From sequence record PQ287644.1: a stretch of DNA of 64,000 nt; one strand, given 5' to 3'. Position 1 is the stretch's first letter, and each line of letters begins with the position of its first letter. Position numbers and translations under genes: made by a program. Below are positions 1,639-27,880 of this stretch, piece after piece. The notes under the pieces are model-generated. The model ran no database searches, had not been told where the DNA came from, and saw nothing but the letters and a program-made list of their open reading frames with translations.

Positions 1639-2892
1639 GTGGAGATTAACACTATGAAAAGCTTTATTGATGTATCGGTAGTAGAAGATGGGGGCAAACA
1701 ATTCCTCTTCGGTATTACTGCGAATCAAAAGACGGGACGACCCGAAGTCGTAGGACATACCGATTCTGATTATTTCAGAGAGGGTGTTGGTCGTGTGTTT
1801 GAACAGCTTATCCGGGAAGAACAACGAAAGGAAGCTGATATTAAACTCCAGTTGGCCTTTATTAAGGCGGTCAAGGAACATCCCGGTAAACAACTGCAAC
1901 TCACGCTTTGCTACAGCGCAAATGGACCGTCAGCTGGAGAATTTTATTGGGTGGAGGATCGGCGTTATACGGCTGACGGGGTGTCCTTCCTATCGAATGC
2001 TCCGGTGTGTATCTATCATAAGAACTGTCTGGATGGTACCGCGGCGGCTTGGGCGGTAAGAAGTGCACTCCCCTTGGTTGAATTGGTGGCTATGAGCTAT
2101 CATGATGATCCGTACGAACTCTTTGGTTCGGGATTGGAGTATCTACAAGGGAAAACGATCTATTGTGTTGATTTCAGTTTTAAGAAAGCGGTTGTAGAAG
2201 CGATTGCTGATCTACAGGATACAGTCTTGATAATCTTGGATCATCACGAGAGTGCTCAACGGGAACTGGGTGAACTCGTCGTTGGTTATTCCGGGAAATC
2301 AACGCTGGGTGATCGGGTTGAGATTATCATCGATATGACACGTTCAGGCGCTAAGTTGACGTACGATTACTTCAACCCTCAACAACAGACGCCTCCGGGT
2401 ATTCTGGCGGTACAAGATCGGGATCTGTGGAAATGGGAGTACGAAGGCAGTAAGGAATGGACCGCGGCCGCCTTTGGGTATCCCCTCACCGTTGAGAGTT
2501 TCGATAAGCTGATTCATCGGGATTACCAAGACGTGGTGGAAGAAGGTCGTACTGTCCTTCGTAAGCAGGAATTGGATGTTGAGAAACTGCTCCCGAGTGC
2601 GCGGCCTTACACGTTGGAGGGGTACAACTGCTTGATTGTTAATGCCAGTTATTTCCACGCCAGTGATGTAGGGGATAAATTGAAGAGTCGAGACGGTATT
2701 GACTTTGTAGTCACTTACATGGATGGTAAGGATAGCCGGATCTTCTCTCTACGGGGTAAGGATAAAGTGAACCTAGCGGAAGTGGCTGAACGTTTTGGAG
2801 GAGGCGGTCACCCTAACGCAGCGGGGTTTTCACTCTCCTACGACGATCCCCGTTTCTCCCAGTCACACCTGTTACTGTATTCCGGTACTTAA
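1639..2892 (+). CDS. DHH/DHHA1-family phosphoesterase with extra N-terminal domain
   Basis: YHKNCLDG, VDFS, ILDHH, DRDLW and C-terminal FGGGGHPNAAGF motifs; about 115 extra N-terminal residues. Confidence 0.85.
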   Translation: MEINTMKSFIDVSVVEDGGKQFLFGITANQKTGRPEVVGHTDSDYFREGVGRVFEQLIREEQRKEADIKLQLAFIKAVKEHPGKQLQLTLCYSANGPSAGEFYWVEDRRYTADGVSFLSNAPVCIYHKNCLDGTAAAWAVRSALPLVELVAMSYHDDPYELFGSGLEYLQGKTIYCVDFSFKKAVVEAIADLQDTVLIILDHHESAQRELGELVVGYSGKSTLGDRVEIIIDMTRSGAKLTYDYFNPQQQTPPGILAVQDRDLWKWEYEGSKEWTAAAFGYPLTVESFDKLIHRDYQDVVEEGRTVLRKQELDVEKLLPSARPYTLEGYNCLIVNASYFHASDVGDKLKSRDGIDFVVTYMDGKDSRIFSLRGKDKVNLAEVAERFGGGGHPNAAGFSLSYDDPRFSQSHLLLYSGT

Positions 2893-3060
2893 ATGGACAC
2901 TCACACACTGTTCTTAATCATTGACCTGATAGGTAAATCCGTTTTTATTGGTGACTTAGTGACTCGCGTGGACGACCATCGACTTATGAAGTCTATCCGA
3001 TATTTGGAGAATCGGAAGGTGATTAAAACGGTTACGGTTACCCAATGTTTACGTAACTAA
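2893..3060 (+). CDS. Small hypothetical protein (55 aa)
   Basis: ATG abuts previous stop; MDTHTLFLIIDL...; fills the gap between two genes. Confidence 0.5.
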   Translation: MDTHTLFLIIDLIGKSVFIGDLVTRVDDHRLMKSIRYLENRKVIKTVTVTQCLRN

Positions 3061-3139
3061 CAGGTATTCCATTTGATGGGGGGTGGTTAGTATACAGGCT
3101 GACCACCCTGTTCTCTCTATTTTTTTCGGGATAAGTGGA

Positions 3140-3565
3140 ATGAATAATTACGGGTATGTGGATGTGTCCTTGGTAGGACCTGAAGTAGAGGAAATCTTTG
3201 GCTTGCTCTTGGAGTGTGGTATCGCACCGGCTGCGGAGTATAACCTGCATTGTACCCTGATGTACGATGAACAGGCAGAAGAACCGCTGGTAAAACTGAA
3301 TCCTGATGCGAAATTCACCGCCTACGTGACAGGGATTGATGTACTGGGAGATGGGTTGGTGTTTAACCTTACCAGCAAAGACCTCGCTGATGAACACCGT
3401 AGGTTGAAAGACGGTGGATATACCCATTCCTTTGATGCCTTCTTACCGCACATGTCTGTCACCTATGACTTCGATGAATACGACATGCTGAAAGTGAAGC
3501 AAGCGTTTGCAACCTGGGGTGGTCGACAACTCACCTTCAGTAAAGAATCGTTCGGAACCAAATAA
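3140..3565 (+). CDS. acb1: 2H phosphodiesterase, Acb1 / T4 gp57B-like (candidate anti-CBASS nuclease)
   Basis: Two HxT/S motifs (LHCTLMYD, PHMSVTYD); segment LVFNLTSKDLADEHRRLKDGGYTHSFDAFLPH resembles T4 57B as recalled; ATG 3140 chosen over GTG 3083. Confidence 0.75.
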   Translation: MNNYGYVDVSLVGPEVEEIFGLLLECGIAPAAEYNLHCTLMYDEQAEEPLVKLNPDAKFTAYVTGIDVLGDGLVFNLTSKDLADEHRRLKDGGYTHSFDAFLPHMSVTYDFDEYDMLKVKQAFATWGGRQLTFSKESFGTK

Positions 3566-3641: not shown

Positions 3642-3663
3642 AAACCTACATAATCAGGGTGAA
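3642..3663 (+). promoter_or_regulatory. Putative phage early promoter
   Basis: aaacctacataatcagggtgaa, one of 8 intergenic copies of a CCTA(C/T)ATNA motif. Confidence 0.7.
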
Positions 3664-6739: not shown

Positions 6740-6761
6740 AAACCTACATTATTCATATGAA
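6740..6761 (+). promoter_or_regulatory. Putative phage early promoter
   Basis: aaacctacattattcatatgaa after terminator. Confidence 0.7.
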
Positions 6762-27858: not shown

Positions 27859-27880
27859 AAACCTACATCATTAGGGTGAA
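27859..27880 (+). promoter_or_regulatory. Putative phage early promoter
   Basis: aaacctacatcattagggtgaa. Confidence 0.75.

Follow-up and report, generated by a model that had tools for sequence, protein, structure and literature searches.

A putative Acb1-family 2H phosphodiesterase with a lid-less core in EL-like nucleus-forming phages

Introduction

How might a phage that shelters its genome in a nucleus-like shell meet the defences that this shell cannot exclude, and is the protein known as gp126 in phage EL built to do so? Jumbo phages that form a nucleus are considered for therapy, since defences aimed at DNA are kept out by their shell. They are known to be vulnerable to signalling and abortive-infection systems, CBASS and type III CRISPR among them. 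In the work of Costa et al., protection by CBASS type III-C against a nucleus-forming, phiKZ-like phage exceeded 1e5-fold, and abortive-infection systems are noted to get around the phage shell (PMC10889362). Two groups of phage enzymes offer a precedent for a countermeasure. The Acb1 proteins of T4 and Erwinia phage FBB1 are experimentally shown cGAMP phosphodiesterases (PMC9117128), and the 2H phosphodiesterase PDE-9 of Burkholderia phage BCSR5 (9q2g) is an experimentally shown 3'3'-cGAMP phosphodiesterase (bioRxiv 10.1101/2025.08.21.671373). The window analysed here is a stretch of 64,000 nucleotides from record PQ287644.1, and the original prediction for one of its genes was an Acb1-like cyclic-nucleotide phosphodiesterase that, in a phage of the nucleus-forming type, would cover the gap left by the shell. 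We analyze this proposal at the level of sequence family, predicted fold, active-site residues, host phage and gene neighbourhood. Our literature search found no report on the activity of EL gp126 or on Acb1 in chimalliviruses specifically.

The gene and its annotation

The gene starts with ATG and comprises 141 codons followed by a stop, with an intact reading frame on translation (Table 1). The first 8 kb of the window match Pseudomonas phage HHBS8_1 at 100% identity and EL at about 96%, and the 141-residue product is 100% identical to EL gp126 (YP_418159), the name used hereafter. All ten EL-like isolates carry the gene in intact form, conserved at 97-100%. Both the RefSeq record of EL and HHBS8_1 label gp126 'RNA ligase'. 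This label is found because PHROG 755, which gp126 matches with an E-value of 1e-27, carries that name; the same name is given to T4 57B, the Acb1 gene itself. In GenBank, homologues from RisingSun and SNUABM phages are described as 'putative structural protein', and we dropped the idea of a virion protein, for which no evidence was found. RisingSun gp120 is unmentioned in the text of the mass-spectrometry paper and absent from one portion of its detection table (PMC6034870).

Table 1. Sequence features of the gp126 locus, with positions counted from the first base of the window
Feature	Position	Strand	Basis
DHH/DHHA1 phosphodiesterase (EL gp125, 417 aa)	1639..2892	+	Pfam DHHA1, 33.8 bits, above cut-off
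Upstream hairpin (3080-3109) followed by a T-run, 13 bases 5' of the start codon	3080..3127	+	Terminator-like scan match; hairpin fold z-score -2.97
Acb1-family 2H phosphoesterase gene (EL gp126; HHBS8_1 CDS0143)	3140..3565	+	ORF, translation
Y6, counterpart of base-stacking Y12 (T4/FBB1 Acb1)	3155..3157	+	MAFFT mapping
First catalytic motif, H37-C-T39	3248..3256	+	Aligns with T4 H44/T46 and PDE-9 H50/T52
L69, at the position of base-stacking W74, in a shortened beta-hairpin	3344..3346	+	MAFFT mapping
F98, counterpart of base-stacking F107	3431..3433	+	MAFFT mapping
Second catalytic motif, H104-M-S106 (HxS, not HxT)	3449..3457	+	Aligns with T4 H113/T115 and PDE-9 H123/T125
W126-G-G128 loop, clade-specific, preceding the last strand	3515..3523	+	Invariance in 18 homologues
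G+C-rich 13-bp hairpin directly past the stop codon	3575..3604	+	Fold energy -30.3 kcal/mol, z-score -3.82

Family assignment by sequence

Profile searches place gp126 in the Acb1 family. The Pfam Acb1 model (PF23474) recognizes the protein with 43.5 bits (E 3.5e-11), over a curated gathering cut-off of 27 bits, and judged by these profile statistics the match exceeds chance, in line with the Acb1 membership that had been proposed for the gene. The match covers only positions 29-122 of the 144 in the profile, and both in EL and in all relatives tested it ends before the C-terminal lid positions of the model. EL-type proteins score between 43 and 64 bits, a range into which PDE-9 falls (56 bits). 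A word-based search returned 17 further homologues at 50-68% identity, and precomputed PF23474 matches are present on every one of 18 close homologues. The profile built from these 18 sequences, when compared with PDB sequences, reaches E-values below 0.01 for Acb1 proteins only: FBB1 Acb1 (7t26/7t27, 2.4e-4), PDE-9 (9q2g, 3.8e-4) and the H50A form of PDE-9 (9q2y, 9e-3).

The models of other 2H families respond weakly or fail to respond. On gp126, the 2_5_RNA_ligase2 model (PF13563) scores 20.8 bits, below its cut-off of 27 bits; the model of the LigT/2'-5' RNA ligase superfamily (PF02834) finds no match, and neither does any NCBIfam model. The sub-threshold PF13563 score is nonetheless one of the observations that favor a different reading, in which gp126 has a general role as a 2',3'-cyclic phosphodiesterase of RNA or nucleotides, healing RNA ends or handling RNA-decay products, and is no nuclease of immune signals. 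We regard this reading as unlikely; above threshold, the profiles from Pfam and PDB select Acb1-type proteins exclusively.

In the comparison with T4 57B, hhalign gives a probability of 87%, with H37 opposite H44 and H104 opposite H113. BLASTP aligns only residues 70-110, a 41-residue block with 37% identity that contains GYTHSFDAFLPHMSVTYD in gp126 opposite GATHDFDDYTPHITLSYN in T4 57B. The GxxHxF...PHxT/S block is common to both proteins. The two HxT/S motifs of the original prediction can be read directly in the sequence (Table 1), and its claim of a C-terminal block like that of T4 gp57B holds for this 41-residue segment; it does not extend to the extreme C-terminus, where the T4 lid PLKLDWADDLK is without counterpart. 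The pairwise similarity to T4 is so weak that the EL clade was probably missed by the 273-member Acb1 set of Hobbs et al., which was collected by BLASTp with T4 Acb1 (PMC9117128). Doherty et al. list 75 viral 2H phosphodiesterases, and two relatives, pTD1 gp030 and EJP2_129, appear there as unassayed members (bioRxiv 10.1101/2025.08.21.671373). The family assignment of gp126 adds little by itself: the Pfam model already captures the protein, and UniProt names its close relatives Acb1.

Predicted structure and structural matches

The AlphaFold2 model of gp126, computed from an 18-sequence alignment, has a pLDDT of 91.2 and a pTM of 0.82. In a Foldseek search of the PDB, the first rank is taken by BCSR5 PDE-9 (9q2y/9q2g, E 2e-7 to 9e-7), followed by FBB1 Acb1 (7t26 at 7e-6, 7t27 at 4e-5). 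Below these lie the plant Appr>p cyclic phosphodiesterase, Usb1 and the penguinpox cGAMP phosphodiesterase, and structures of the LigT and 2'-5' ligase types appear at E-values of 2e-3 or worse. Thus the best matches are phage cGAMP phosphodiesterases and the RNA-ligase-type 2H enzymes rank lower, the outcome that the original prediction needed from this search. In a library of predicted viral structures, the top match is the RisingSun homologue (44% identity), which, like several other matches, bears the UniProt name 'Anti-CBASS protein Acb1'.

The alignment of the model to structure representatives with VIA-align gives Z-scores of 12.1 for 9q2y (139 residues) and 10.9 for 7t27, then 10.7 for 1fsi, 9.9 for 9bkq and 9.4 for 1vgj; no LigT-type structure exceeds 9.4. 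The structural margin over other 2H enzymes, including non-immune ones such as the Arabidopsis Appr>p cyclic phosphodiesterase (Z 10.7), is modest, only about 1-3 Z units, and discrimination rests mainly on the sequence profiles. LigT and 2'-5' RNA ligase-type proteins share with gp126 the superfamily fold and the two HxT/S motifs, and they differ in their sub-threshold Pfam score and lower structural rank. The same numbers can be read in two directions: 2H cyclic phosphodiesterases and 2'-5' ligase-type structures still reach Z-scores of 9-10.7, as would suit a role of gp126 in RNA-end healing or decay, whereas the LigT-type structures fall clearly below the two phage cGAMP phosphodiesterases.

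PDE-9, the best structural match, was deposited in the PDB as 'Anti-CBASS protein Acb1' (9Q2G/9Q2Y). It has in common with gp126 the catalytic HxT/HxT(S) pairs, the core Tyr, an inserted helix that separates the second motif from the last strand, a C-terminus that stops with the last strand and a similar score on the Acb1 HMM. The two proteins differ in that PDE-9 has a 15-residue N-terminal lid and W83, the equivalent of W74, and gp126 has neither; sequence identity between them is only about 19-25%.

Active-site residues and the missing lid

We used a MAFFT alignment of 15 sequences to map the residues of T4/FBB1 Acb1 onto gp126; as a control, the catalytic residues H50 and H123 published for PDE-9 fall in the correct columns. 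Hobbs et al. described for FBB1/T4 Acb1 an HxT/HxT tetrad (H44, T46, H113, T115), four stacking aromatics (Y12, W74, F107, W147), an E141 contact with adenine (N6) and a C-terminal lid formed by residues 145-152 (PMC9117128). The proteins belong to the same PF23474 family and have the same 2H fold, and the catalytic tetrad is aligned throughout, H44/T46 with H37/T39 and H113/T115 with H104/S106, the second motif being HxS in gp126 and not HxT. Y12 corresponds to Y6 and F107 to F98. W74 is replaced by L69 in a hairpin shorter by about four residues, and this position is Leu throughout the EL clade. E141 has no clear equivalent: its column holds, with uncertainty, G139 in gp126 (E136 lies three residues earlier) and T162 in the validated PDE-9. 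W147 has no counterpart.

H37, T39, H104 and S106 are invariant in the alignment of 18 close homologues, as are F98, L69 and G70, and across 13 chimallivirus homologues, the most distant at 25% identity, neither the tetrad nor Y6 varies; in wider alignments, the Y6 position is Tyr or Phe, so that the aromatic character is kept. W126 and G128 are also invariant among the 18 close homologues, and have no counterpart in T4-type Acb1. The conservation of Y6 and F98, base-stacking residues typical of Acb1, speaks against a general RNA-processing role; the pocket, open and lid-less and without W74 and W147, would in turn fit small or linear substrates, in favor of such a role.

Both known lids, the C-terminal one with W147 in T4/FBB1 and the N-terminal one in PDE-9, are absent in gp126. 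The protein starts five residues ahead of the core Tyr and ends at the last beta-strand, and in the structural alignment its model residues 2-141 correspond to residues 15-164 of 9q2y, all beyond the PDE-9 lid. In 12 of the 13 chimallivirus homologues, the N-terminus lies 4-7 residues before the core Tyr and the C-terminus 2-8 residues past the last strand, without an LDW motif. A longer N-terminus of gp126, initiated at a GTG at 3083 (160 aa, 19 additional residues, a possible lid), was considered and rejected: it shares bases with the upstream hairpin and T-run, its sequence lacks conservation, and the gene in related contigs starts at the equivalent Met. Because the 19-residue extension is unconserved and the ends of the homologues are similarly short, the lid-less state is not an annotation artefact.

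Elsewhere among the homologues the ends differ. Vibrio phage pTD1 gp030 (locus L009, 3962-4444) extends at its N-terminus by 13-14 residues ahead of the core Tyr, about as long as the PDE-9 lid; therefore, the lid state varies among nucleus-forming phages. A longer and more divergent homologue at three further loci (L029-L031, 4001-4357), two of them from chimallin-positive partial contigs, ends in ...ELYFTDEYWKPCD; in contrast to the EL clade, it may have kept a short C-terminal tail with a Trp.

What the loss of a lid means for activity can be gauged from work on lid modularity by Doherty et al., who found the PDE-9 lid at the N-terminus instead (bioRxiv 10.1101/2025.08.21.671373). In their study, lid-deleted T4 Acb1 fails to trigger Panoptes, interpreted as a need for the lid in catalysis, and PDE-9 lacking residues 1-15 still degrades 3'3'-cGAMP while most of its 2'3'-c-di-AMP activity is lost. 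For two structural groups of viral 2H phosphodiesterases, 18 messengers were tested and none was cleaved (bioRxiv 10.1101/2025.08.21.671373); therefore, the fold and the catalytic histidines alone do not guarantee this substrate class, and the inactive groups also favor the RNA-processing reading. The lid-less architecture of gp126 is a natural experiment on a question raised by this recent work, namely whether the 2H core alone suffices for signal degradation.

In view of the same losses, of the lid and of two stacking residues, gp126 might be a remnant with weak catalysis or none, serving as a binder or sponge or without any function; T4 Acb1 required its lid to function in cells. This seems highly improbable to us, given the full catalytic tetrad and the many core residues that are invariant across the 13 homologues and a gene kept intact in every EL-like isolate.

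Proposed function

We propose that gp126 is an Acb1-family, metal-independent 2H phosphodiesterase that would degrade cyclic oligonucleotide immune signals in the cytoplasm, and assign this reading a probability of roughly 0.6. It builds on the family given by the profiles, the fold, the complete catalytic tetrad, two of the four base-stacking residues and the occurrence of the gene in chimallin-encoding phages. The substrate, the place of action in the cytoplasm and a part in anti-defence are inferred from these, and gp126 likely cleaves cyclic oligonucleotides.

By homology, gp126 would act in the host cytoplasm, outside the chimallin shell, where it would bind immune signals of the cyclic di- or tri-nucleotide type, for example 3'3'-cGAMP and cA3. 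Acid-base catalysis would be provided by H37/T39 and H104/S106: a ribose 2'-OH would attack the 3'-5' phosphodiester bond, a 2',3'-cyclic phosphate intermediate would form, and a linear 3'-phosphate product would be released. As an outcome, CBASS effectors, and possibly type III CRISPR effectors, would never be triggered. The defences targeted in this way would be of the signalling-based, abortive-infection type, which the phage nucleus cannot exclude. With only a minimal, lid-less core, gp126 probably departs from T4 Acb1 in rate or in substrate range. The main doubt about an immune-signal nuclease stems from the missing lid, W74 and W147, taken together with the importance of the lid in T4 Acb1 and with the viral 2H groups that cleave 0 of 18 messengers.

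Nucleus-forming carriers and distribution

The original prediction placed the gene in a nucleus-forming type of phage, and chimallin profile searches bear this out. A chimallin homologue (phrog_4795) is encoded by EL (E 2.1e-169) and by HHBS8_1 (E 2.7e-169), and chimallin is encoded as well by RisingSun and by pTD1, whose gp126 homologue has 30% identity. An IMG/VR scan identified 14 loci with a homologue, of which 12 are neither EL nor RisingSun records. The chimallin search covered these 12, eight near-complete contigs and four fragments, and detected chimallin in all eight near-complete contigs (219-238 kb) and in two of the four fragments. Judging from the chimallin gene, the EL-type carrier phages are of the nucleus-forming type. 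BCSR5 differs from EL in this respect, as the phrog_4795 profile search detected no chimallin there.

No PF23474 gene was found in phiKZ. The argument that an Acb1-type enzyme would cover a gap in the protection offered by the shell gains from this, since CBASS III-C strongly restricts a phiKZ-like nucleus-forming phage (PMC10889362) and phiKZ is without an Acb1-family gene. If the proposed function is true, the presence of a conserved Acb1-family enzyme in the EL/RisingSun/pTD1 branch, and not in phiKZ, would help account for host-range differences among these phages.

More distant homologues (about 28-38% identity) occur in the Rak2-like giant phages GAP32, EJP2 and Hallingskeid, in which chimallin was not detected. 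In these phages (L010, L013 and L014, at about 3001-3447), the homologue lies in a conserved island, between a nicotinamide phosphoribosyltransferase and a Sir2/Nudix/PhoH group, likely a NAD-related anti-defence or metabolic island. The position of the Rak2-like homologue between the phosphoribosyltransferase and a Sir2-Nudix pair brings up another substrate, a cyclic phosphate or signal derived from NAD or ADP-ribose (e.g., ADP-ribose 1'',2''-cyclic phosphate), by whose removal gp126 would counter NAD-based defences and not CBASS. Structure lends this some substance, since the Arabidopsis Appr>p cyclic phosphodiesterase matches the model statistically as well as FBB1 Acb1 does (Z 10.7 versus 10.9). 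We nevertheless hold such a substrate to be very improbable: EL and the other chimalliviruses lack the Rak2-type neighbourhood, neither Pfam nor PDB profiles give a sequence-level match to the plant cyclic phosphodiesterase family, and our literature search found no 2H enzyme shown to target immune signals of this kind.

Gene neighbourhood

In EL-like chimalliviruses, the gene belongs to a conserved block. RNase H lies upstream of the Acb1-like gene in 13 of 13 distinct chimallivirus loci, and in eight of the 13 a DHH/DHHA1 gene is placed between the two, directly abutting the Acb1-like gene in two cases; gp126 itself is located downstream of a NAD-dependent DNA ligase. The genomic context of T4 acb1, which sits between 57A and ipI, is different. 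The block can be taken as the setting of an RNA-processing enzyme, with gp126 working alongside the neighbouring RNase H and a DHH/DHHA1 nanoRNase-like enzyme on RNA ends or decay products; the constant presence of RNase H, the frequent DHH/DHHA1 gene and the position after the DNA ligase gene all favor this assignment.

In EL gp125, the DHH/DHHA1 protein of the block, the DHH and GGGH motifs are intact, and about 120 additional residues are present at the N-terminus. Its nearest solved sequences are the pApA/pGpG phosphodiesterase TM1595, NrnA and a c-di-AMP phosphodiesterase. The three complete relatives without a DHH/DHHA1 gene in the block lack it in the whole genome as well. The DHHA1 profile, which finds the EL protein, gives no match in phiKZ, RisingSun, pTD1 or GAP32, and a single-sequence DHH search was blank in phiKZ, RisingSun, pTD1, GAP32 and BCSR5. 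The DHH/DHHA1 gene is therefore an accessory gene of EL-like chimalliviruses that is position-locked beside the Acb1-like gene when present.

Returning to gp126 as an immune-signal nuclease, gp125 is a putative partner. The products of Acb1 are short linear oligonucleotides, so it is conceivable that gp125 digests the linear products of gp126; shared descent explains the linkage of the two genes equally well. In T4/FBB1 Acb1, steric hindrance by the lid and the W74 hairpin limits the substrates to di- and tri-nucleotides. Because both restricting elements are gone, lid-less gp126 could take larger rings, such as the cA4 and cA6 of type III CRISPR. An open-pocket gp126 that accepts cA4 and cA6 and forms a two-enzyme module with gp125, the first enzyme linearising the ring and the second digesting it, is a speculative extension that we think quite unlikely. 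If true, such a module would suit nucleus-forming phages, which are left vulnerable to signalling-based defences.

Flanking sequence elements

The sequence around gp126 includes several minor features. The length of the poly-T run at 3119, 5' of the start codon, varies, with three additional T in the contig of one public run. Contigs of public runs that contain this stretch are of uncertain RNA or DNA origin; those that do come from RNA-seq cover gene 127 alone, at low depth, which does not indicate that gp126 is silent. A 55-residue ORF at 2893-3060 (plus strand), directly 5' of gp126, is annotated in HHBS8_1 (CDS0142) but missing from the annotation of EL in RefSeq. At the equivalent place, related contigs carry a small ORF that abuts or overlaps the start of the Acb1-like gene; similarity among these small upstream ORFs is weak and confined to a C-terminal motif of the type T-(L/I)-V-(T/S)-(V/I).

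The decamer AAACCTACAT matches the core of the 'putative phage promoter' annotated in EL. On the plus strand of the window it is repeated upstream of genes, in three exact copies (3642-3651, 6740-6749 and 27859-27868) and nine copies with one mismatch, against 4.4 expected. The copy at 3642-3651 lies just 3' of gp126, ahead of gene 127.
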